Part shown: positions 7,835-61,532 of the stretch, piece by piece
How positions within the stretch are numbered: position 1 is the first letter of the stretch
Layout: every line of letters starts with the position of its first letter
IMG/VR virus record: IMGVR_UViG_3300005056_000001
Coordinates: 124,001-188,000 of that record
Reading direction: 5' to 3' (one strand)
DNA: 64,000 nt
Notes under the pieces: model-generated
Seen by the model: only the letters and a program-made list of their open reading frames with translations
What the model was told of the DNA's origin: nothing
The model's database searches: none
Position numbers and translations under genes: made by a program

Positions 7835-9106
7835 ATGGAGATTCGTCTTAAAAATATTGCATGTATCAAGGACAGCACCATAAAGATTGGCGGACTGACG
7901 GTCTTAACAGGGGAAAACAACACAGGCAAAAGTATACTAGGCAAGGTTTTATATGGTATACAAGCAGGTGTTTTTCAACAAAAACATGCCTATATATCCC
8001 ACAAGGAAACTGTGATGACAATTCTTTGTAAGGAATTGGTTGTCTTTATTAGAGATTGTAGTTCCTATGACAGGAGACGTAGTGTGCGAAAAATATTCTC
8101 TCCAAAACATTATTTTGATGAGCTGATGTCAATGATTGATGAGCAAGACGCAAAAGTTTTTGAGGGATGGAAAGATAACATCTATGATAATGCAGCCAAA
8201 TTCTTGGAAAGGAAAAATGACCTTGATATTGTTAGGGTAAAATTGGACAGCATGATCCACGCCCTAAAAATTGCCCCAAACAGAAGGGATGAACTAGTCG
8301 GATGTGTGGGTCGGAATTTATCGAATAACCTGCAAGGGAACATTAAGCACGACCGCAAAAAAGAGGCCCGTATTGTTGTAAGTGATGAACAAGGCGAAAT
8401 AATAAATATTTCGGCTTCTGAAAATAGCCATATTGTTGATTCGGTGTCGTTGCGTGAGGATTATGTGTTTAATGCGGTTAGTGTGGTTGAGTCGCCTGTT
8501 TACCTACAATTAAGCCTCTCGGATACGCTCATACCCTACCAAGAACAGCTAATGACTATGTTGGTGGATGGAAAATATTATAAATGTCCCGAGGAAAGTG
8601 TTTGTGGCGACCATGATATATGGCTAGACAAACAAATAAAAAATATAACCTCTATTATAGGCGGTACTATTTCTTCTTGCCCAAAAGGGTTTGTGTTTAT
8701 AAAAAACATGAATGTTGATGGTAAGCGTGGATTTAAGGACATCCCGTCAACTGCCTGTTCTCTTGGTGTCCTGACATTTGGCATGATACAATTGTTATTA
8801 AAGGGACATGGTATTGTAAAAAATGGAGTCGTGTTTATTGACACTCCTGAAGCCCATTTACACCCCAAGCAACAAGTAGAATATGCCAAGGTAATAGCCG
8901 AATTAATTAAATATGGGGTTAATGTGATATTAACCACCAATAGTCCCTACATGCTCAAGGCATTGGTTGAGTACACAAAAGAATGCCCGTCCAATTATTA
9001 TTTTGCGACTCGTGGAGAGGGCGGTTGCAATATGGAAAATATCACATATAATCTAAACAAGGCATTTGTTTCGTTTGCGGAACCATTGCAGGATCTTGTT
9101 TGGTAA
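7835..9106 (+). CDS. AAA_15/AAA_21-type ABC ATPase with degenerate catalytic motifs
   Basis: Walker A LTGENNTGKS; Walker B FIDTPEAHLHP; H-loop TTNSP; TATATTTG box at 7799-7806. Confidence 0.85.
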   Translation: MEIRLKNIACIKDSTIKIGGLTVLTGENNTGKSILGKVLYGIQAGVFQQKHAYISHKETVMTILCKELVVFIRDCSSYDRRRSVRKIFSPKHYFDELMSMIDEQDAKVFEGWKDNIYDNAAKFLERKNDLDIVRVKLDSMIHALKIAPNRRDELVGCVGRNLSNNLQGNIKHDRKKEARIVVSDEQGEIINISASENSHIVDSVSLREDYVFNAVSVVESPVYLQLSLSDTLIPYQEQLMTMLVDGKYYKCPEESVCGDHDIWLDKQIKNITSIIGGTISSCPKGFVFIKNMNVDGKRGFKDIPSTACSLGVLTFGMIQLLLKGHGIVKNGVVFIDTPEAHLHPKQQVEYAKVIAELIKYGVNVILTTNSPYMLKALVEYTKECPSNYYFATRGEGGCNMENITYNLNKAFVSFAEPLQDLVW

Positions 9107-9568: not shown

Positions 9569-11131
9569 TTAAACCTTGACATTTATAATTTTGCCTGCTA
9601 CAACCAAGCGATTGTCGCCATCAATTATTTTATAAATCACGGCACCTTCTCCGTGGGCATACTCGTCGATGTCATACCTAAACACAGAACCCTCAATGTT
9701 CCTGTATTGTTTGGTTCCTATTTCCATAATCGTGAAAGAAGGAACGGTATTTTGGATTGGGTTGTCAATAGTGGCGGTACTGCTGTCCCTTGGGTTCTTT
9801 TCTTCGTACTTGCGATTAAACTCGACCGAGTTTGTTAGGTCTTTGTTGTACACACCCACGATATCAACAACTTGCTTGACAGGGTATAACGTAATCTCGG
9901 CGGTACTAAAGCTCTGAATATAGACAGCCTTGTCAACCTGTACAATTGTTGGTGCATCAAACACGGCCTGCATCTCGGTGATGTTCTGTGTGATATTATT
10001 TATTAGGTTGTACTCCTCTAAATCAACATCAAATGTGACCCCAAACAAAGACGTTACGTCCGATATAAGTATAAACGAGGTCTTGATTATCGAGGCACCG
10101 TCCAATGTTGTTAAACGGCCTGTTATCGAAACCTCGATATGGTCTGTGGCACTGTTTAGGTTTGTTGGGTGATGGGTTATTGTGTTAAATGGTGCCAAGG
10201 AGTTTTCCACGAAAAGACTTGTGGTACCAACAGCACTATTTCCTATGTCATACTGAACCAACGACACCTCATAAATAAGCGAATTGAAGCTTATACCCTG
10301 TACCTGCAAATAGTCCTCCAAAACAAACCTTGTGTGTATCATCCTAAAGGTTACCTCACCATTGGTTTGTGACACCTCGATGTCGATGTCGTTGTTCTCG
10401 AATGACACCGCAATACTGTTCTCGTTGATTATTTCAGGAATAATCTTTGTGAATGTCAAGGCACTTTCCACAAACGGAACAATGCCTGTTGCAGGAAGCA
10501 CACTATATTCGACAAAAAGGGCCTCGGGTGTGTCTGTTCCAAACAACAATGTGTTTATCTCAACAGCATCAGGAGCAGTCATGGACTGTAAACGGGCAAT
10601 AGACAACAGTCTAAATTCTATTTCAGAATTATAGATAGTGCCATTAAGCACGATTTCTCGATCGCTTGCCACAATCTTAGGCAGCGTATAGTCATCATAA
10701 ATATTAACAAGGTCTACGATACCATTGGAACCCCTGTACTGAATCGAAAGGTATTGGAGCGCATTTGTGGCAGGGTTGTAATTGAAACCGCTCGCAAACA
10801 TTAGTTTGCACACAATAAAATCTAGGTTGCTACTCAGGGGTGACACCACAAAATTACTCAGCTCGGCATCATTATGAAAATTTGGGGCAAAATGTGTGTC
10901 AGGATAATAATTGGGAGTCGGGCTAAGGATTACCTTGTCGGTTCCGTTAAGTGTATTGGGGATATATCCGATGCTATTGGTGCGCTCCTCTATTTCACCG
11001 TCCTCGAATAGTAATTGCTGACGTGTATTGCCGTATTGATTCAGGTATAGATTTGTCGTGTTAAGATCCACACTATTGATGTCGTCACTTAAAATCAATA
11101 ATACATTGGGTGCTAAAACTATTTGTTGCAT
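9569..11131 (-). CDS. putative virion structural protein
   Basis: 520 aa, acidic and beta-rich composition; GTACATA 16 nt upstream. Confidence 0.55.
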   Translation of the reverse strand: MQQIVLAPNVLLILSDDINSVDLNTTNLYLNQYGNTRQQLLFEDGEIEERTNSIGYIPNTLNGTDKVILSPTPNYYPDTHFAPNFHNDAELSNFVVSPLSSNLDFIVCKLMFASGFNYNPATNALQYLSIQYRGSNGIVDLVNIYDDYTLPKIVASDREIVLNGTIYNSEIEFRLLSIARLQSMTAPDAVEINTLLFGTDTPEALFVEYSVLPATGIVPFVESALTFTKIIPEIINENSIAVSFENNDIDIEVSQTNGEVTFRMIHTRFVLEDYLQVQGISFNSLIYEVSLVQYDIGNSAVGTTSLFVENSLAPFNTITHHPTNLNSATDHIEVSITGRLTTLDGASIIKTSFILISDVTSLFGVTFDVDLEEYNLINNITQNITEMQAVFDAPTIVQVDKAVYIQSFSTAEITLYPVKQVVDIVGVYNKDLTNSVEFNRKYEEKNPRDSSTATIDNPIQNTVPSFTIMEIGTKQYRNIEGSVFRYDIDEYAHGEGAVIYKIIDGDNRLVVAGKIINVKV

Positions 11132-21687: not shown

Positions 21688-22689
21688 TTATTTGGTTTTA
21701 GGGGTTTTAATAATGGTAGAAAACAGGCGTTCAACCTTTTTTTGTAAGTCATCCACACAGTCGTTGACCCAAAAAATAATATCACACTCCTTGAAAATGT
21801 CAATGGTAAAGGAGGTTTCTGATTCTAAGGGTTTGTTTGGGTCAAAAATTCCAATCACCAAATCAAACATTCCTTTTTGGTTACAAGACCGTAATTCTTC
21901 AATAGAACGCATTCCTGCATACATATCATTATTCAACAGAATATACTCGGCAAGTCTAGATTTATTGGGTGTGTTGTATTCGCATATCATGTCAAACCAC
22001 TCGTCTCTCTTACTCCTTCTGTCAAGAAAACATTCCTCTAGTGTTTTGTATCCATACTTGTCCTTGAGTGCCTTAAAAATAAACAATTCATTGGCTGCTG
22101 TTGACGAGTCGCAATGGGTAAGGCCCACAACCTTGTTTATGATTTCTGCCAAGGTGCTTTTCCCGTGCTCTTTGTGTCCTAGTATAAGAAATTTAGTTTT
22201 TGTTTTTGCCCCAAATTCCTCGATTGTATCAACTCTTAGATGCGTCTTATAGTCTTGATTGTGTGATGCAGAATATAGGTAGGTTAATATACCCGCCTCA
22301 TTTAGCTCTTTGACGTGGTGAGCCCCATCGTCCAAGAAAATGTCAACATTGTGCTTCTTTAATGTTTCGACCTTGTTCGCCACCGTATAAACAGGGGCAT
22401 CAGGGAACCCATTTCGTGAAAGCCATAACTCACTTATACGGGAAGGAATCTTACGTGCCGTACAATACCCATCCACCTTAAAATTAATTTTATCGGGCGA
22501 GTTCAGAACAGGCATTAGTAGCCAAAAATCTTTGTCGTTTTCTACCTTATGTAGATTGTCCACAAATCTTTTGTCGTTATATTCGGAAGGTCTTGATTTG
22601 TCTTCGAAATCGAACCAATTATTAAAATGTGTGACAAAATCTGCCAATACACCATCAATGTCCAAGAATACTTTTTTGGTTTGTATCAT
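21688..22689 (-). CDS. HAD 5'(3')-nucleotidase fused to a P-loop dNMP-kinase-like domain
   Basis: DIDGVLADF...FLDD; then GHKEHGKST...GMRS..E. Confidence 0.78.
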   Translation of the reverse strand: MIQTKKVFLDIDGVLADFVTHFNNWFDFEDKSRPSEYNDKRFVDNLHKVENDKDFWLLMPVLNSPDKINFKVDGYCTARKIPSRISELWLSRNGFPDAPVYTVANKVETLKKHNVDIFLDDGAHHVKELNEAGILTYLYSASHNQDYKTHLRVDTIEEFGAKTKTKFLILGHKEHGKSTLAEIINKVVGLTHCDSSTAANELFIFKALKDKYGYKTLEECFLDRRSKRDEWFDMICEYNTPNKSRLAEYILLNNDMYAGMRSIEELRSCNQKGMFDLVIGIFDPNKPLESETSFTIDIFKECDIIFWVNDCVDDLQKKVERLFSTIIKTPKTK

Positions 22690-33649: not shown

Positions 33650-33712
33650 TTTTACGTAAAACTTGCGTAATCCAAAACCTTGTTGTAGATTCGTTGTATA
33701 CCAAGAAGGTAG
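33650..33712 (+). promoter_or_regulatory. repeated early promoter with 5' stem-loop
   Basis: TTTTACGTAAAA-C-TTGCGT-N17-TAGATTCG, then TACC AAGAA GGTA. Confidence 0.8.
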
Positions 33713-34343: not shown

Positions 34344-34982
34344 ATGAGTTGGCAGACAAAAAAGCTTTTGTATGAATTAAAAAACATAGAAATAGCAAAA
34401 TATAACGTAAATTTTAAATTTTTTTATGTACCTTGGAAGTCACAGGTCTTTGTTTATTGTGAGTTTAACAATGTTTTTTCTAGATATACAATGCATGGTG
34501 TTTGGGATAAAAAAGAATCTTTAGTGCTTATGATAGGACATTGGGATATCGAAGAAAAGAAACCATGTAGCTACTTTGAGCAAATATCAGCAGCACTGAA
34601 GGCCTCTATTAAAAGTAAAATAAAGACCATATCGAATGGTGATGTATTCTATGGAGATTCATTTTATTACTCCAATAGTATACTAAACGTATCAAAATTC
34701 GAATTCGGTAAAGTAAAACCATTAACATGGGACACAAGACACTCTTTATTTTACGACTACAAAAAAAAGAAATTCACACTAAATACAAATACAACAGTTC
34801 CTCAATTTCCGACAGGAAGACACGTGTCACGTATTTGTTCCGAAACATTCAAGAACTTGGATTCTTTCTTTGGTGATACCGAATGTTGGGGGGTTTTTGG
34901 TGGTAAGCGATCTAAAGATAACATCGACTACTTTGAAGGATTCTTAAAGGATTTGCAAACAAATAAAAATATTTTTACGTAA
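34344..34982 (+). CDS. hypothetical protein
   Basis: ORF whose stop overlaps the next promoter repeat. Confidence 0.6.
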   Translation: MSWQTKKLLYELKNIEIAKYNVNFKFFYVPWKSQVFVYCEFNNVFSRYTMHGVWDKKESLVLMIGHWDIEEKKPCSYFEQISAALKASIKSKIKTISNGDVFYGDSFYYSNSILNVSKFEFGKVKPLTWDTRHSLFYDYKKKKFTLNTNTTVPQFPTGRHVSRICSETFKNLDSFFGDTECWGVFGGKRSKDNIDYFEGFLKDLQTNKNIFT

Positions 34983-35016
34983 AACTTGCGTAATCAAAAA
35001 ACTTGTTGTAGATTTG
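34973..35016 (+). promoter_or_regulatory. repeated early promoter
   Basis: TTTTACGTAAAA-C-TTGCGT-N17-TAGATTTG. Confidence 0.8.
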
Positions 35017-40743: not shown

Positions 40744-41979
40744 ATGATCAAAAAAATAAAAACGGTAGAGTTGTTTGCAGGGGTTGGGGGTTTTAGATTG
40801 GGCTTGGAGAAGTACAATAAGTACGAAATCGTTTGGAGCAACCAATGGGAACCATCCACGAAAAAACAACATGCATCATTGGTGTATGAGGCAAGATTTG
40901 GAACCAAGAACCATTCAAATGAGGACATTGGTTGTGTCCAAACAGAAGAGATACCCGACCATGACCTCCTTGTTGGGGGTTTCCCTTGTCAGGACTATTC
41001 GGTTGCCACAACCCTAAACAATGCCAAGGGTTTGGTGGGGAAAAAGGGGGTTTTGTGGTGGTCTATCCATAGAATACTAAAGGAAAAGGCCCACAAACCA
41101 AAATACTTGTTGTTTGAGAATGTAGACCGACTCTTGAAGTCTCCGTCTAGCCAAAGAGGACGAGACTTTGGGGTTATGCTAAAGAGCCTGTCTGAACTAG
41201 GCTATGCCATTGAATGGCGTGTGGTGAATGCTGCCGAATATGGCATGCCACAAAGAAGACGTCGGGTGTTTTTTATAGGCTATCACAAATCAACAAGCAT
41301 TTATAAAAAACTCGAAAGTGCCAATAAGTCGGAATGGATTACAAAGGACGGCACAATCACAGGCGCATTTCCTGTCAATAGCCAAGAAGAGCCTTGTAAC
41401 AATTTTAAGTTGGATGGTAGCCTTGTCGAGATTACCGAGGACTTCAACAAAGGCGGAAAGATGTCTCCGTTTTTAAACTCGGGTGTGATGATAGACGGAA
41501 ACGTTTACACAACAAAGACTATACCTTTATATGATGGTCGGAAGACAGTCCTTAAAGACATCCTACAAAGCGAGGGTATCGAAGACGAATTCTATATCGA
41601 CGGTAATGACCACGACAGATGGAAATACCTGAAGGGCTCCAAAAAAGAACAACGAACAACCAAGGATGGTTTTACCTATAACTATACCGAAGGATCCATG
41701 ATTTTCCCTGATGCCTTAGACAATGCGTCTAGGACAATTATCACAGGAGAAGGAGGAAAGTCACCCTCACGATTTAAGCACGTCATAGAATCAAAAGAGG
41801 GCCTAAGACGATTGATACCTGTTGAACTAGAGCGATTGAATATGTTTCCTGACGACCACACCAAATTGGATGGTATTTCCAACACAAAACGTGCATTTTT
41901 TATGGGGAATGCCTTGGTTGTGGGAGTGATCGAGAAGTTGGGTGAGGTATTGTTTGAGCGTGTTGGTGGAGATTTGTAA
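40744..41979 (+). CDS. dcm: C5 cytosine DNA methyltransferase, M.Sau3AI-like (probable GATC specificity)
   Basis: ELFAGVGG, VWSNQWEPS, GGFPCQDYSVA, ENVDRLLKSP, QRRRR, MGNALVV. Confidence 0.92.
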   Translation: MIKKIKTVELFAGVGGFRLGLEKYNKYEIVWSNQWEPSTKKQHASLVYEARFGTKNHSNEDIGCVQTEEIPDHDLLVGGFPCQDYSVATTLNNAKGLVGKKGVLWWSIHRILKEKAHKPKYLLFENVDRLLKSPSSQRGRDFGVMLKSLSELGYAIEWRVVNAAEYGMPQRRRRVFFIGYHKSTSIYKKLESANKSEWITKDGTITGAFPVNSQEEPCNNFKLDGSLVEITEDFNKGGKMSPFLNSGVMIDGNVYTTKTIPLYDGRKTVLKDILQSEGIEDEFYIDGNDHDRWKYLKGSKKEQRTTKDGFTYNYTEGSMIFPDALDNASRTIITGEGGKSPSRFKHVIESKEGLRRLIPVELERLNMFPDDHTKLDGISNTKRAFFMGNALVVGVIEKLGEVLFERVGGDL

Positions 41980-47767: not shown

Positions 47768-47967
47768 GTTATAATCCACCCGAGTGTTCTGATGATTTTG
47801 AACAGATTCAGAATATGTCGGACATGAGTCGATTAATGCAGGATACCACAAAGGCCTTTACCGAATTATTGAGTCTGTCACTGTCAGCAGCACTGTCAAG
47901 TATCGAGACTCTTTCAATGCCACACACGAATGAAAACACCGACAACAACACACCCGAGGAGGATTAA
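47764..47967 (+). CDS. hypothetical protein
   Basis: ORF. Confidence 0.5.
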   Translation: MSYNPPECSDDFEQIQNMSDMSRLMQDTTKAFTELLSLSLSAALSSIETLSMPHTNENTDNNTPEED

Positions 47968-48001: not shown

Positions 48002-48361
48002 CTAGGTCAACAAGGTTTTTATGTCTTGTTTTAGCCTAGTCATAGTGTCAGATTGTTGAAGCTCGCTGTCAGATGTTTCCTTTTCCAATATTCGGAGAGT
48101 ACCAAGCAGACATTCCATTTGTGCAATGTCTAATTCTAAAAGATAATTTCCTGATGTATTAAAAAAGTAATCCTTCATTGCCGCAATTCCGTGCTTTCCA
48201 CAGTCGTCGAAGTTGCCCAAGCATATATTATAGACATACGTTGTGGATATCGGGAATATGTTTAGCGGGTCATCCTTTTTTAGTCTTGAATACACGGCAG
48301 GCGAGATGTGCAGGTCTTCTATTGCCTTTACGGTTCTTTGTTTTAGCTCTTCGTTGTTCAT
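48002..48361 (-). CDS. hypothetical protein
   Basis: last gene of the minus-strand early operon. Confidence 0.6.
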   Translation of the reverse strand: MNNEELKQRTVKAIEDLHISPAVYSRLKKDDPLNIFPISTTYVYNICLGNFDDCGKHGIAAMKDYFFNTSGNYLLELDIAQMECLLGTLRILEKETSDSELQQSDTMTRLKQDIKTLLT

Positions 48362-48861
48362 TTTCCTTTTCTTTTGATCTTAAAAATATAATTACAGCCA
48401 TAGGTCAGCATAGTCACATTGAATTTTAGAATATAGATGGATGCCGTCCCTAGTTTCTGCAAAACAAAACCACCACCAATATAAATTCCACTGTGGATAA
48501 GCTCTACGCAATGTCCAAGATTTTTCCCGAAAAGAATGCTATCGCCCTTCTTAAGTGTGTTTCTGTCTACCTTTGAGACGTCTGTTTTTTCGAACAAGTA
48601 TTCCTTTTTTATTGGGTCTAGGCTTTTGTGTTCTGTTACTTCTGTTGTGAAGTTGTGACAGTTTTTGTACCTGAACCGTTTTTCGTTGCAGAAGCGTCCA
48701 AGGTTAGCCTGTTGTTGTCGGGGTAGTCCTACCGCCTTGTTGTCAATTTTTATATCCACCTTCCCGACATTCTGATCAGGAATTTCAATTTCTCTTGCCT
48801 TGTACATATAGCCATTAAAGGACTCTTTTGTTTTGGTGTTTTTTGCCTTTAGGAATTTCAT
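48358..48861 (-). CDS. NlpC/P60 (papain-fold)-like Cys-His protein
   Basis: NCHNF...KKGD.ILF...HSGIYIG. Confidence 0.55.
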   Translation of the reverse strand: MKFLKAKNTKTKESFNGYMYKAREIEIPDQNVGKVDIKIDNKAVGLPRQQQANLGRFCNEKRFRYKNCHNFTTEVTEHKSLDPIKKEYLFEKTDVSKVDRNTLKKGDSILFGKNLGHCVELIHSGIYIGGGFVLQKLGTASIYILKFNVTMLTYGCNYIFKIKRKGK

Positions 48862-49211
48862 TTAAATCTTTTTGTACGAACCTCATTTCTAAGGTTCTGT
48901 AGGTCAATCTGTAGGTCAGGCTCAAACACAAAGCCTGTTTCTGTTCTGACAGCCCAACGGATTATTGGGAATGTGCCAAACAAACCGTGCCATATGGCCA
49001 AGAATGGTGCAACTGCCGTGCTCATGCTAGGAAGTATGATTGTGGCTGTCTGTCCTGCCTTTAAGTCCTCGAACTCGTCGAGTTCTAGCAGTATTGTTTC
49101 TAGTTGGTTTATTAATGTTTCGGGGGAGGTTTGATCCAACATACCTACCTTTGGTTGGTGGGTTGTTCCGTTGACTATGGCAGGATGCCCCGAGAAGTTT
49201 AGTATTTGCAT
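48858..49211 (-). CDS. csx15: Csx15-family protein (CRISPR type III ancillary homolog), stand-alone
   Basis: ILNFSGHP...IILP....A...LA..HG..G.FP.IR...DLQ.LR...R.KR. Confidence 0.8.
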   Translation of the reverse strand: MQILNFSGHPAIVNGTTHQPKVGMLDQTSPETLINQLETILLELDEFEDLKAGQTATIILPSMSTAVAPFLAIWHGLFGTFPIIRWAVRTETGFVFEPDLQIDLQNLRNEVRTKRFK

Positions 49212-49265: not shown

Positions 49266-49448
49266 TTATAGGTAATCAGCATCAAGACCACTATTCATTA
49301 ACCCTTCAAAGGCGTGCATTACACACACACCGTCATCCTCCCATATTAGAAGTATTCTCTTTACTGCCCCTTCTAGGCTTGGTGGAAATGTAATAATGTA
49401 TTCAGCACCATCCTCGTCTCTTAAATTTATATTAGTTTTACCGTTCAT
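49266..49448 (-). CDS. small hypothetical early protein
   Basis: directly downstream of an RNA motif copy. Confidence 0.65.
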   Translation of the reverse strand: MNGKTNINLRDEDGAEYIITFPPSLEGAVKRILLIWEDDGVCVMHAFEGLMNSGLDADYL

Positions 49449-49530
49449 AATATTTCGACACTTTCAGCCGCTTGTTACCTTATCCTATTTTGGCAATCGT
49501 ATGCAGCATTACTATAGGGCTGCTATTTTT
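49449..49530 (-). ncRNA. candidate structured cis-regulatory RNA, copy D
   Basis: 4-copy repeat with structure-preserving substitutions. Confidence 0.7.
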
Positions 49531-49546
49531 AATTAAGTTTTTTATA

Positions 49547-49750: not shown

Positions 49751-49793
49751 GATGTTTTTAGTGTTAAAAGTGTACTACCTTATTGGTATGCAA

Positions 49794-49835
49794 CGAATCT
49801 ACAACAAGTTTTTAATTACGCAAGTTTTACGTAAA
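49794..49835 (-). promoter_or_regulatory. repeated early promoter, copy D (16-nt spacer)
   Basis: TTTACGTAAAAC-TTGCGT-N16-TAGATTCG. Confidence 0.78.
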
Positions 49836-50904: not shown

Positions 50905-50986
50905 AATATTTCAGCACTTTCAGCCGCATGCCACCTTATCCTATTTGAGTGATCGTATGCAGCTAAATTATAGGGCTGCTATGTTT
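50905..50986 (-). ncRNA. candidate structured cis-regulatory RNA, copy C
   Basis: as copy D. Confidence 0.7.
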
Positions 50987-51000
50987 TTAATTGTAATTTT

Positions 51001-51240: not shown

Positions 51241-51282
51241 AATATTAGTCTTTTTTAAGTGTACTACCTTATTGGTATGCAA

Positions 51283-51325
51283 CAAATCTACAACAAGTTT
51301 TTTAATTACGCAAGTTTTACGTAAA
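51283..51325 (-). promoter_or_regulatory. repeated early promoter, copy C
   Basis: TTTACGTAAAAC-TTGCGT-N17-TAGATTTG. Confidence 0.8.
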
Positions 51326-52187: not shown

Positions 52188-52269
52188 AATAATTCGGCAC
52201 TTTCGGCCGCTTGTCGCCTTATCCCATTTAGGTGATCGTATGCAGCATTACTATAGGGCTGCTATGTTT
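52188..52269 (-). ncRNA. candidate structured cis-regulatory RNA, copy B
   Basis: as copy D. Confidence 0.7.
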
Positions 52270-52307
52270 TAATTAAAATTTTCTATAATTACCCTTTCGG
52301 TATGCAA

Positions 52308-52349
52308 CGAATCTACAACAAGTTTTTAAATTACGCAAGTTTTACGTAA
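52308..52349 (-). promoter_or_regulatory. repeated early promoter, copy B
   Basis: TTACGTAAAAC-TTGCGT-N17-TAGATTCG. Confidence 0.8.
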
Positions 52350-53169: not shown

Positions 53170-53251
53170 AATATTTCGGCACTCTCAACCGCTTGTCACC
53201 TTATCCTATTTGAGTGATCGTGTGCAGCATTACTATAGGGCTGCTATGTTT
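53170..53251 (-). ncRNA. candidate structured cis-regulatory RNA, copy A
   Basis: as copy D. Confidence 0.7.
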
Positions 53252-53289
53252 TAATTAAAATTTTCTGTCATTAACCTTTCGGTATGCAA

Positions 53290-53332
53290 CAAATCTACAA
53301 CAAGGTTTTTAATTACGCAAGTTTTACGTAAA
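53290..53332 (-). promoter_or_regulatory. repeated early promoter, copy A
   Basis: TTTACGTAAAAC-TTGCGT-N17-TAGATTTG. Confidence 0.8.
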
Positions 53333-53529: not shown

Positions 53530-54735
53530 TTGAAGAAAAACAAGACATATAAATACAGGTTATCCCCTAATGTTACACAAAGCATTATGCTGAATAAAAC
53601 ATTCGGTTGTGTGCGTGCATATTGGAATAATCTTGTTGCGACATTTAATTCGTATGATAAAGTAACTAATCCCAAGCCTTTATTTAATACAGGAAAGGAG
53701 TTTAGTGACGTTTTTGTTTACGCAAAGGAAGTATCTGCTGCATCACTACAGCAAAAGTTTCGTGATTTTTCTCAATTCAAAAATCAGTTCTTCAATAAAA
53801 AAAGGAAAAAGAAAATAGGAAGGCCAAGCTTTAAGAAAAAAGGTTTTGGAGATTCCTTTAGATTGCCCAACCAAAAAATCCGTATCAAGGATAACAAAAT
53901 TAGACTTGAAAAGATTGGTTGGGTTAAATTTGACAACCACAGACAATTGCCTGTGGATTCACGTGTCCTGTCAATAACAGTAAAGAAAGACAGTGTAGGA
54001 GATTATTTTGCTTCTGTCTGTTTTGAGTATGTATGGAAGCCCAAGATAAATAGAATGAACATTATAGAGTCAAAAAAGGAAGTATCTACTATAAAACCAA
54101 ATGTGGGCATCGACCTAGGACTTACCTATTTAGCCATCCTTTCGGATGGTACAGTATTCTTGAATCCTAAATATCTTAGAGAAAGCCAATCTAAGCTTAA
54201 AAAGTCACAAAGAATCCTTTCCCGAAAAATAAAAGGTAGTGTACGATGGAACAGGCAACGGATAAAGGTTGCCAAATTACACCGTAAGATTGTTCGTCAA
54301 CGTGATTGGTCACATCATAACATAACCACGTGGATAGCCGACAATTACAACAACGTAGGGATTGAAACGTTAAGTATACAAAACATGATGAAGAACAGGA
54401 AACTTTCTAAATCTTTTGCTGATACCTCACTAAGTAAATTTGTCAATATGCTTATTTATAAGGTAGATGATAGAGGCAACGAGGTAGTCAGACTAGGAAC
54501 GTTTGTTCCTTCGACAAAAGAATGTTCTTCCTGTTCACACCAACAGACCGTTGCGCTATCTGAAAGAACCTTTAAATGCGAATGCTGTGGATTTGCCATG
54601 GATAGGGACTTGAATGCAGCAATAAATATTAAGAAAAAGACCGTAGGAGTTAATGCGGTCATCGCCAATGGCGACAAACGAACACTGAGCAACAAGAAGT
54701 CTCTACACCCGAATGTGGGTGTAAAGCAGTTGTGA
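53530..54735 (+). CDS. tnpB: TnpB RNA-guided endonuclease (IS200/IS605, IS1341-type, no tnpA)
   Basis: YKYRLSPN..FGCVR..WN; GIDLG; IETL; CSSC/CECC; DRDLNAAINI. Confidence 0.95.
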   Translation: MKKNKTYKYRLSPNVTQSIMLNKTFGCVRAYWNNLVATFNSYDKVTNPKPLFNTGKEFSDVFVYAKEVSAASLQQKFRDFSQFKNQFFNKKRKKKIGRPSFKKKGFGDSFRLPNQKIRIKDNKIRLEKIGWVKFDNHRQLPVDSRVLSITVKKDSVGDYFASVCFEYVWKPKINRMNIIESKKEVSTIKPNVGIDLGLTYLAILSDGTVFLNPKYLRESQSKLKKSQRILSRKIKGSVRWNRQRIKVAKLHRKIVRQRDWSHHNITTWIADNYNNVGIETLSIQNMMKNRKLSKSFADTSLSKFVNMLIYKVDDRGNEVVRLGTFVPSTKECSSCSHQQTVALSERTFKCECCGFAMDRDLNAAINIKKKTVGVNAVIANGDKRTLSNKKSLHPNVGVKQL

Positions 54736-59005: not shown

Positions 59006-59380
59006 ATGAATACAAATTTTCACATAGAAGAATATAACAATCCGAACCCAACCTACATTGTTCTAACCATGAGCTATGTAAGTTTTAGCGACTACTTGCC
59101 CGAGATTGCCAAGGTTTTAAATCTTAAAACCTTCAAGGGCACCGTTTTGTTTGATTTACTTTTGAATAATGGCAGACATCATAGATTTTATGATGTCGAG
59201 TTTTCCGATAAGACGTTTCAACTGTCCACATTTAAAAATATTAAACCAAATCAAGACCTCCTGAAATTCTGTGCAAACTTTTATATCAAAAATTTATCGT
59301 TGATTGATGATAGCCTTTTCCCTGAATCCGAAAACACCCTGATAAAAAATCATATTAAAGAGTATTCACAAACAATATAA
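59006..59380 (+). CDS. rnlB: RnlB/LsoB-family antitoxin, orphan
   Basis: IVLTMSY.S...L.EI...L....FKGTVLFDLLLNNG...RF. Confidence 0.78.
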   Translation: MNTNFHIEEYNNPNPTYIVLTMSYVSFSDYLPEIAKVLNLKTFKGTVLFDLLLNNGRHHRFYDVEFSDKTFQLSTFKNIKPNQDLLKFCANFYIKNLSLIDDSLFPESENTLIKNHIKEYSQTI

Positions 59381-59954: not shown

Positions 59955-60944
59955 TTATACATCCTTTAGTTGCTCCTTAATACTATCGGCCAGAAATTTG
60001 GCTAAATTGACAGGAACAGCATTCCCAATCATTTTATATCCTGTGGCAACTTTTTTGTAATGAAAAATAAAATCATCAGGAAATGTTTGTATCCGTGCAC
60101 ATTCTCTTACGCTTAGGCGTCTGTATAAATGTTCTTGTGTGGGTTCGAATATGCGCTTGTCACGCTCAATAGATACCATTTTTGGAGCCTGTGGATGTAT
60201 GGGGGCATGTCTTCCTCCTGCCTGAATAGTAAAGGACTGTTCGTTCCAACTTCTGACCCTGTTTCTTGACATATACATTGACGAAAAACCTCCGATCATA
60301 TATTCATGGTTGGGTACTTTGCACTGTCCGTTGCTATAATTCTTTTCTAGCGCAGCAAGGCTATTGTGTTGTAAGTCCGATATTGTCTCCTGTAGTGTTA
60401 TTTTCGGGAATGTAATGTCAGGAAATTTGAAATCGAAACCCAAATCTTTTCGGATGCCAATAAATATCACACGTTTTCTGTCTTGGGGAACATTGTAGTC
60501 GGATGCATTAAGGAGTTTGAATGATAGGTTATAACCAACACCCGCATTTTTTAACATTTCCTTTATGTTATCCAAGGCAGATTCGTGTTTTTTGAGCAAC
60601 ATACCACTCACATTTTCTGCCAAGAAGAATTTGGGTTGTTTGTCATTAAGGATTCTAATAAAGTCAAAGAACAACTGTCCTCTTTTGTCGTCCATACCCT
60701 TAAGACTACCTGCTTCGCTCCAACTTTGGCAGGGCGGGCCACCGATGATACCATCACAATCAGGAACCGCATCCGAGGTTATTTTTGTGATACTTCGTTT
60801 GTCCAATATGGTTTCGGGATGATTCTTTTCATAGGTTTCCCAAATATCCTTGTCATATTCGTTGGCCCAAATAACATCAAAGCCTGCCTTTTGGAATCCT
60901 AAATCCAATCCGCCTGCACCCGCAAAAAAAGAAACTACTTTCAT
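59955..60944 (-). CDS. C5 cytosine DNA methyltransferase, M.HaeIII-like (probable GGCC specificity)
   Basis: FAGAGG, GGPPCQSWSEAG, ENV, QDRKR, TRD MSRNRVR.W.E..FTIQA.GR...HPQAP. Confidence 0.93.
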   Translation of the reverse strand: MKVVSFFAGAGGLDLGFQKAGFDVIWANEYDKDIWETYEKNHPETILDKRSITKITSDAVPDCDGIIGGPPCQSWSEAGSLKGMDDKRGQLFFDFIRILNDKQPKFFLAENVSGMLLKKHESALDNIKEMLKNAGVGYNLSFKLLNASDYNVPQDRKRVIFIGIRKDLGFDFKFPDITFPKITLQETISDLQHNSLAALEKNYSNGQCKVPNHEYMIGGFSSMYMSRNRVRSWNEQSFTIQAGGRHAPIHPQAPKMVSIERDKRIFEPTQEHLYRRLSVRECARIQTFPDDFIFHYKKVATGYKMIGNAVPVNLAKFLADSIKEQLKDV

Positions 60945-61037: not shown

Positions 61038-61532
61038 CTAATCAATACCCTTAAACGGCTTGAAGTGTTCTGTTATAATAAGAAACTTTGACCTGCTGTT
61101 GTTTGCATAGCTTATCATGGCCGTCCATTTCATTTTGTTTGTCTCAAAGTCACGGCTTCCTTTTATTGTCTGTGACAGTGGCTTTACCTCAACAAGCCAT
61201 CTTTCGTCGTTATCTGTGTTGACCACAAAATCAATATAATAATTTCCTTGTTTGTAGCCCTTTATTTCATTGCCTCTTTTATATCCAACCGCAAATGGTT
61301 CCGAATCCCACGACACGACCTTGGCACACCTTTCGCACCATATCATAAATTTACGCTCAAGGGATGATCTGTATATCGGGCGATATTGACCAATGTATTT
61401 GTTCTTCAGGGGGAGTTGAAAGTATCCATTGTCGTACACAAGTTTTTTGTTTGGCTTGTTATTCCTCATACGGGCACCACTTTCTTGGGTGATTTCCCCG
61501 ATTATTATTTTTTGGGCGTTCTTGTTTTTCAT
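61038..61532 (-). CDS. T4 gp4-like head completion nuclease (TnsA-like PD-(D/E)XK)
   Basis: KYIG....IYRSSLERKFM.WC...W.SE...YYIDF...LVEVKP. Confidence 0.85.
   Translation of the reverse strand: MKNKNAQKIIIGEITQESGARMRNNKPNKKLVYDNGYFQLPLKNKYIGQYRPIYRSSLERKFMIWCERCAKVVSWDSEPFAVGYKRGNEIKGYKQGNYYIDFVVNTDNDERWLVEVKPLSQTIKGSRDFETNKMKWTAMISYANNSRSKFLIITEHFKPFKGID

Follow-up and report, generated by a model that had tools for sequence, protein, structure and literature searches.

Ring nucleases are the main route by which viruses counter cyclic oligoadenylate (cOA) signalling, and only two viral enzymes of this kind, AcrIII-1 and AcrIII-2, have been characterised. This work deals with a candidate of a third kind, a csx15-like gene carried on a 64,000-nucleotide stretch of DNA (referred to here as the window) that corresponds to positions 124001-188000 of the 368,109-bp contig JGI 3300005056 Ga0071102_1000001 (IMG/VR UViG_3300005056_000001). 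A near-identical contig of 24 kb is present in a second sample. Several cellular members of the Csx15 family have been characterised. Chi et al. reported that Csx15 dimers stack head to tail around cyclic tetra-adenylate (cA4), and that PfCsx15 is a cA4 sponge and CliCsx15 a slow cA4 nuclease, both being specific for cA4 (10.64898/2026.01.21.700848). The same authors found that CliCsx15 neutralises cA4-dependent type III immunity in E. coli, and their mutagenesis implicated H11 and R123 of PfCsx15 and H13 and H90 of CliCsx15 (10.64898/2026.01.21.700848). Klimavicius et al. described a filament-dependent cleavage that extends from cA3 to cA6 and to the trinucleotides of the cyclic-oligonucleotide-based antiphage signalling system (CBASS), the substrates of CsCsx15 and HaCsx15 being 3'3'3'-cAAG, 2'3'3'-cAAA and cA3 to cA6 (10.64898/2026.10.26.761840). 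In their account a catalytic histidine at the head (H8 in HaCsx15 and CsCsx15) and Arg118, Arg122 and Arg125 at the tail form a composite site between dimers (10.64898/2026.10.26.761840), and mutagenesis has shown that binding, filament formation or catalysis depends on such His and Arg residues (10.64898/2026.01.21.700848; 10.64898/2026.10.26.761840). In cells, the link of Csx15 with Cas10 is strong and that with CBASS weak (10.64898/2026.10.26.761840), and about 25% of the cellular csx15 genes are orphans (Hoikkala et al.).

The presence of Csx15 in viruses has a short history. A screen of 28,114 phage genomes by Hoikkala et al. covered six families of ring nucleases, Csx15 among them, and according to Chi et al., who cite that work, no phage genome was seen to carry Csx15 (10.64898/2026.01.21.700848). 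The reports of 2024 and of early 2026 thus had no Csx15 in phage genomes. The first list of viral copies dates from October 2026, when Klimavicius et al. (28 Oct 2026) described one viral homologue from NCBI and over 20 from env_nr and IMG/VR, and proposed the name AcrIII-3 for them (10.64898/2026.10.26.761840). These authors considered the viral copies rare and mostly located in prophage regions, and suggested that they may be broad-spectrum (10.64898/2026.10.26.761840).

The gene in the window encodes a protein of the size and layout expected for a single Csx15 domain:

48858..49211, minus strand: csx15-like gene, single domain, 117 amino acids, intact, with an ATG start; candidate viral ring nuclease or cA4 sponge of the AcrIII-3 type

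An earlier reading of this DNA, made from the sequence alone (the sequence-only reading), had singled out this 117-residue open reading frame (ORF) by a Csx15 signature and had named a match to a Csx15 hidden Markov model as a way to check it. The ORF is intact at exactly those coordinates, and all four motifs are found: LNFSGHP (residues 4-10), LP (60-61), LAIWHGLFGTFPIIR (71-85) and LQNLRNEVRTKR (104-115). The model match was also obtained, since the protein reaches 40.7 bits (E=2.5e-10) with the curated NCBIfam equivalog NF040560 CAS_Csx15, whose cut-off is 35, and the PADLOC Csx15 model, which is independent of it, matches with E=2.6e-7; no model of Pfam (even at E<=1) or PHROGs matches the protein. 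Among 1.84 billion cluster representatives, searched exhaustively, there were 48 relatives at E<=1e-3, and the 30 homologues that were aligned all match NF040560. The profile built from these 30 sequences recovers the solved Csx15 structures over the full length (residues 3-116), with E=1.1e-12 for PfCsx15 (9TET) and E=2.7e-10 for CliCsx15 (9TEU), as well as the Csx15 domain of the cA4 sensor CbCash (9YLU, E=5.8e-5). The single phage sequence matches solved Csx15 weakly (E=0.0066 for 9TET, and 0.64). Altogether, there is very little doubt that the protein is a Csx15.

Conservation was scored over the alignment of the 30 homologues, and the phage clade described below was looked at separately. 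The head motif (S7, G8 and H9) is invariant in the 30 sequences, and H9 aligns with H11 of PfCsx15 and H13 of CliCsx15. In the central H-G-x-x-G-x-F-P motif, conservation reaches at least 90% for H75 and G76 and is complete for G79 and P82, with H75 corresponding in the profile alignment to H82 of PfCsx15 and H90 of CliCsx15. The tail arginines R108, R112 and R115, also at least 90% conserved, align with R116, R120 and R123 of PfCsx15, and their R-x3-R-x2-R spacing is that of these residues and of R118, R122 and R125 of HaCsx15. F94 aligns with Y113 of CliCsx15, in a region where the alignment is less certain. H9, H75, R108, R112 and R115 are all invariant in the phage clade, so that, as far as the alignment tells, every residue that mutagenesis found important is kept in the phage protein. 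The AlphaFold2 model computed from the 30-sequence alignment (pLDDT 95.5, pTM 0.85) alternates beta strands and alpha helices, with two beta-hairpins and a C-terminal helix bearing the arginines, and a Rossmann-like fold related to those of CARF and SAVED domains is predicted for the phage Csx15. The best-ranking structures in a Foldseek search of the PDB are cyclic-nucleotide binders, namely Crn1 Sis0811, the SAVED domains of Cap5 and Cap4 and the CARF domain of Cam1, at weak scores (E 0.05 to 1, TM<=0.5); the search against BFVD gave no significant or useful match.

The closest relatives of the protein (P0002-P0006) are 60-68% identical to it and form a clade with it (support 99/95). Every member of this clade with a visible context sits in a phage-like contig: genes for ERF, Sipho_Gp157 and terminase surround two of them (L003 and L004), and genes for DnaG primase and a glucosaminidase surround two others from marine metagenomes (L007 and L008). 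The phage contigs of these relatives measure 10.9 to 39 kb and contain no signalling system in their annotated stretches. A second lineage (the P0012 cluster, 40-43% identity) is represented in a contig with Mu-like baseplate genes. When the 14 other ORFs around the window gene were compared by tblastn with all the other Csx15 loci, no counterpart was found; a conserved cassette of partner genes around csx15 was accordingly rejected. As csx15 is the only gene that these loci have in common with the window, it moves alone, as is typical of accessory or anti-defence genes. With a dN/dS of 0.27 between two phage copies, csx15 of this clade is, on the sequences compared, under purifying selection; the clade is spread over several unrelated phage backbones. 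Among 50,697 GenBank phage records, neither megablast with 20 kb nor tblastn with the protein found anything, and the latter result agrees with the published absence of Csx15 from curated phage genomes; a scan of IMG/VR with a narrow alignment yielded nothing beyond the source contig and one partial match. A more distant homologue, 35% identical, was observed at positions 10001-10345 of a 213-kb JGI contig (L012), amid orphan genes and with genes for patatin, an SNF2 helicase, NADAR and a dCTP deaminase nearby; it could be that this contig is a further huge phage, or else a defence island.

The cellular relatives, at 37-46% identity, come from metagenome-assembled genomes of Pseudomonadales, Gammaproteobacteria, Magasanikbacteria and Parcubacteria, and the nearest of them lie in type III-B loci or in loci with a fusion of reverse transcriptase (RT) and Cas1. 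The most informative is the one with 46% identity:

1294-13651 of L020, a Pseudomonadales metagenome-assembled genome: type III-B locus with Cmr6, Cmr4, Cmr3, Cas10/Cmr2, Cmr1, csx15, RT-Cas1 and the start of the array

Here, csx15 is placed between the Cmr1-Cas10/Cmr2-Cmr3-Cmr4-Cmr6 operon and the RT-Cas1 fusion with the array start. Two ORFs of 281 and 381 residues adjoin csx15 in this locus and could be effectors. In a second case (L010), csx15 lies 166 bp from an array of 18 repeats and adjoins RT-Cas6, Cas1 and Cas2. The other cellular relatives are orphans, in line with the published proportion of about a quarter.

The contig itself is probably that of a jumbo phage with a Bacteroidota host. 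The window carries phage replication genes, with a helicase, a clamp loader and a 5'-3' exonuclease of phage type; it also encodes two DNA methyltransferases, an RNA ligase and a polynucleotide-kinase-like protein, and most of the other ORFs are small and have no family match. The best matches of the helicase are in jumbo phages of Tenacibaculum and Chryseobacterium (25-29% identity). A Shine-Dalgarno-like 4-mer precedes 6 of the 87 window genes, and the 20 nt upstream of the starts are 52% A and 9% G; few Shine-Dalgarno motifs together with an A-rich upstream region are the pattern of Bacteroidota. It is from these two features and from the helicase matches that a Bacteroidota host becomes a reasonable guess, no more.

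No type III locus accompanies the phage gene: there is no CRISPR array in the 64-kb window, and no cas gene or cGAS/DncV-like nucleotidyltransferase (CD-NTase) among the Pfam-annotated genes at contig positions 115-196 kb, that is, in the 81 kb around csx15, where the sole Cas-named match is an IS605 OrfB/TnpB transposon gene. The sequence-only reading had likewise seen neither cas genes nor an array in the window, and its central proposal, a stand-alone phage-borne Csx15 captured from type III loci and acting as a candidate cA4 sponge or ring nuclease, is borne out as a candidate, in that the profile models, the homology to solved structures, the conserved residues, the viral context and the type III-B relatives all agree.

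These observations can be integrated in a model that follows the characterised cellular enzymes. A phage lineage would have captured csx15 from type III CRISPR loci. The encoded protein would dimerise, and binding of cA4 would cause the dimers to stack head to tail into filaments in which the ligand is sandwiched between His9, at the head of one dimer, and Arg108, Arg112 and Arg115, at the tail of the next. At this composite site cA4 could be cleaved, with His9 acting as the leaving-group acid together with Arg115 and Arg108 from the neighbouring dimer, or it could simply be sequestered. In either case, the second messenger made by Cas10 would be drained and the cA4-activated effectors (Csx1/Csm6, Can2 and others) would stay off; cA3 to cA6 and the CBASS trinucleotides are possible further targets. 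On this analogy, the gene is rather more probably than otherwise a captured viral Csx15 that depletes cyclic oligoadenylate, either cutting it within a filament or acting as a sponge, and so serves as a type III anti-CRISPR of the AcrIII-3 kind. The broader statement, that it acts as an anti-signalling counter-defence, is held with about the same moderate confidence, and cleavage is modestly preferred to sponging.

Several points weigh against this proposal. In the Foldseek search of the PDB no match was significant (best E=0.05), its library returning neither 9TET nor 9TEU. The name AcrIII-3 was proposed without an assay, and no biochemistry exists for any viral Csx15 (10.64898/2026.10.26.761840). 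Chi et al. regarded a slow enzyme and a sponge as ill-suited to the large amounts of cOA made by type III systems (10.64898/2026.01.21.700848), and the slow turnover of Csx15 was also noted by Klimavicius et al. (10.64898/2026.10.26.761840). The proposal presupposes a type III system in the host, and the host itself is a guess; in addition, a signalling system borne by the phage could lie elsewhere in the 368 kb, beyond the 81 kb inspected. Finally, the sequence does not separate a nuclease from a sponge, because PfCsx15, inactive as a nuclease, keeps the same residues.

This last point leads to the strongest of the alternatives, namely that the protein is a pure cA4 sponge like PfCsx15, devoid of catalysis, which would buffer a low signal by sequestering it in filaments. 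PfCsx15 is the best match in the PDB and, with the same His and Arg residues, only sequesters cA4, and phages commonly deploy sponges against CBASS and Thoeris (10.64898/2026.01.21.700848). However, the equivalents of the catalytic His and Arg (H8 and R125 of HaCsx15) are strictly conserved in the phage clade, PfCsx15 is seen as an outlier of the family by Klimavicius et al. (10.64898/2026.10.26.761840), and the large cOA output of type III systems would make sponging alone costly (10.64898/2026.01.21.700848). A pure sponge is thus a real possibility, although the less favoured one.

It is also conceivable, but rather unlikely, that the real target is CBASS or another defence based on cyclic oligonucleotides instead of type III CRISPR. 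The cleavage of 3'3'3'-cAAG and 2'3'3'-cAAA by CsCsx15 and HaCsx15, and the suggestion of broad-spectrum viral homologues, speak for it, whereas the association of cellular Csx15, strong with Cas10 and weak with CBASS, does not (10.64898/2026.10.26.761840); nor do the cA4 specificity of CliCsx15 and PfCsx15 (10.64898/2026.01.21.700848) and the position of the nearest cellular relatives found, which sit in type III-B loci. Even so, the label "type III" may be too narrow for the proposed anti-CRISPR, since published Csx15 proteins also cut CBASS signals.

An improbable alternative is that the protein regulates, as in cells, a signalling system of the phage itself encoded elsewhere in its genome, for instance a CRISPR or CBASS system directed against competitors. 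Some huge phages do carry CRISPR-Cas systems, 81 of the 368 kb were inspected, and the window holds a defence-like OLD/ABC-type ATPase (similar to PD-T4-4_A). Against this stand the lack of any cas gene, array or CD-NTase match to Pfam in the 81 kb around csx15 and the clade relatives in smaller phage contigs, whose annotated stretches have no such system. As for a chance ORF, a decaying hitchhiker or a cellular contig miscalled as viral, which the absence of capsid, terminase and tail genes among the ORFs of the window and the many ORFs without family match might suggest, it is very hard to reconcile with an intact ORF, the strict conservation of functional residues, the dN/dS of the clade, the IMG/VR record, the phage-type helicase, clamp loader and exonuclease with best matches in jumbo Tenacibaculum and Chryseobacterium phages, the terminase genes beside clade relatives and the baseplate genes beside the relative of the second lineage.

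The phage protein can now be set beside the described systems. It resembles the cellular Csx15 proteins (PfCsx15, CliCsx15, HaCsx15 and CsCsx15) in its model family, in aligning over the full length as a single domain, in the S-G-H head, the central H-G-x-x-G-x-F-P and the R-x3-R-x2-R tail, and, as far as the model predicts, in a Rossmann-like fold with beta-hairpins. It differs in being encoded away from any cas gene seen and in its 37-46% identity to the nearest cellular relatives, and its 117 residues are about 10 to 20 fewer than the characterised proteins have (the solved chains have 146 and 139 residues). With the vCsx15/AcrIII-3 proteins it shares a viral location, an origin in metagenomes only and a proposed role as a viral ring nuclease, IMG/VR having been searched in that study too; here, the gene lies on a 368-kb jumbo-phage-like contig and its clade on several backbones, while there the copies are mostly in prophage regions (10.64898/2026.10.26.761840). 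The proposed role, destruction of cA4 by a virus and silencing of type III effectors, is that of AcrIII-1 (DUF1874), to which the phage Csx15 has no homology (the Pfam scan returned no family at E<=1). It is also that of AcrIII-2, the vSAVED ring nuclease, which resembles a duplicated Csx15 fold with a head-to-tail composite site (10.64898/2026.10.26.761840), but the phage protein is one Csx15 domain that aligns once from end to end and not two fused subdomains. Unlike AcrIII-1 and AcrIII-2, Csx15 needs filament assembly for catalysis and turns over slowly. In Cash, a Schlafen-Csx15 fusion (PDB 9YLU), the homologous Csx15 domain is described as a cA4-binding sensor, coupled to a Schlafen tRNA nuclease as effector domain. 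No effector part is present in the phage protein, and therefore binding could only remove the signal.

The gene belongs to a tight cluster of four minus-strand genes, which is convergent with a plus-strand block ending at 47967 and has the order 60-residue ORF, csx15, 167-residue ORF and 119-residue ORF. The three companions of csx15 are as follows:

49266..49448, minus strand: 60-residue ORF, first in the cluster; its ATG follows the conserved leader without a gap; no significant family match in Pfam, NCBIfam, PHROGs or PADLOC
48358..48861, minus strand: 167-residue ORF; its ATG overlaps the csx15 stop (ATGA); orphan
48002..48361, minus strand: 119-residue ORF, last in the cluster, with a start codon overlapping the stop of the 167-residue ORF; orphan

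The translational coupling suggests that the genes of the cluster are co-expressed. The 167-residue protein gives a weak signal of an NlpC/P60-like papain fold (Pfam NLPC_P60, 18.9 bits, below the cut-off of 23), its Atlas neighbours are NlpC/P60 and DUF7689, and it had no homologue but itself in 5.8 billion proteins. The 119-residue protein has no family match in Pfam, NCBIfam, PHROGs or PADLOC, and all of its Atlas leads are weak. The sequence-only reading had extended an anti-defence role to these neighbours by association. This extension was not upheld, as they are orphans without counterpart in any other Csx15-carrying phage and only their position speaks for them.

Upstream of the cluster there are two repeated elements, a leader core and a promoter-like module:

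49449..49531, minus strand: conserved leader core (about 83 nt) that runs up to the ATG of the 60-residue ORF; one of four copies in the window
50905-50987, 52188-52270 and 53170-53252, minus strand: other copies of the leader core, each ending exactly at the start codon of a minus-strand gene
49785..49834, minus strand: promoter-like module of 50 nt, with a TTACG-N9-CGTAA inverted repeat followed by CTTG, 20 nt and TAGATTCG; some 345 nt ahead of the start codon of the 60-residue ORF
51274-51324, 52299-52349 and 53281-53331, minus strand: further copies of the module, with TTACG-N9-CGTAA, CTTG, 20 nt and TAGATT(C/T)G
33652-33702 and 34975-34995, plus strand: copies of the same module, which bring the total in the window to six

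The leader can form three short hairpins, in which pairing is preserved chiefly by G-U changes, a single compensatory pair being seen in the four copies; the folding energy was no better than that of shuffled sequences in three of the four copies, and no Rfam family matched. On these three counts the leader was not accepted as a structured RNA. A 17-mer of its core, shared by three of the four copies, has no match in IMG/VR outside this contig, and the repetition may reflect local duplication or a protein-binding leader. Each of the four minus-strand copies of the module, which are those examined, lies upstream of a cluster of small orphan genes. Bacteroidota promoters follow a -33/-7 consensus (TAnnTTTG), which the last part of the module (TAGATTCG) resembles, and the six modules look like one co-regulated class of promoters with an operator. 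Thus, of the earlier picture of an early-promoter operon downstream of an RNA motif, the repeated promoter-like module and leader ahead of a four-gene cluster stand, the RNA fold does not, and early expression is what we infer from the host-type consensus.

Other genes of the window concern mobile elements and the conflict between phage and host:

53530..54735, plus strand: IS605 OrfB/TnpB, a mobile element directly beside the promoter and leader cluster
61038-61532, minus strand: TnsA-like endonuclease gene, a mobile element inside the phage genome
45705-46403, plus strand: RNA ligase (PF09414)
21688-22689, minus strand: polynucleotide-kinase-like protein (PHROG matches)
40744-41979, plus strand: cytosine-C5-type DNA methyltransferase (PF00145, phrog_116)
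59955-60944, minus strand: cytosine-C5-type DNA methyltransferase (PF00145, phrog_116)
59006-59380, plus strand: RnlB_antitoxin protein, 124 residues (Pfam E=8.5e-20; 71 bits, cut-off 27)
7835-9106, plus strand: ABC/OLD-type ATPase, 423 residues (AAA_15/AAA_21; best PADLOC matches PD-T4-4_A, AriA, PtuA and GajA)

Together, the RNA ligase and the polynucleotide-kinase-like protein look like a tRNA repair pair of the T4 type, which acts against anticodon nucleases; neither a tRNA gene nor an Rfam match was found in the window. The two methyltransferases are likely anti-restriction enzymes, and the RnlB antitoxin, of the type that acts on RnlA/LsoA RNase toxins, is a plausible second counter-defence gene. 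The 423-residue ATPase is a defence-like gene on a phage. Several leucine-rich-repeat proteins, an unusual cargo for a phage, are encoded on both sides of the window (L016 1-2163 and L017 12207-13127, at contig positions of about 115-117 kb and 188-189 kb). A bolder version of the anti-CRISPR proposal can be formulated from this setting, and is put forward only tentatively: the Csx15 of the phage clade might be an effective, possibly broad-spectrum cyclic-oligonucleotide nuclease of lytic phages, the 368-kb jumbo phage among them, expressed from co-regulated host-type promoters and placed beside counter-defences that act at the RNA level (the RnlB-type antitoxin and the pair of RNA ligase and kinase-like protein).

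The idea of a viral Csx15 as an anti-CRISPR had already been proposed by the preprint of October 2026 (10.64898/2026.10.26.761840), so that the novelty is modest: the gene is a further example of this just-proposed kind, and may already be among the more than 20 sequences of that study. Three things are added: a huge phage with an intact viral Csx15 that is complete in its functional residues, a well-delimited clade of phage copies on which purifying selection acts and whose gene has passed unaccompanied from one backbone to another, and the anchoring of the nearest cellular relatives in type III-B loci. With only 117 residues, the protein is well suited to a first biochemical examination of AcrIII-3, and it could show whether an enzyme that depends on filaments and turns over slowly can serve as an anti-CRISPR. 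Should the tentative reading as a broad-spectrum nuclease of lytic phages prove true, it would overturn the published view of Csx15 as too slow for viruses and confined to prophages, and a single small protein would block both type III CRISPR and CBASS.

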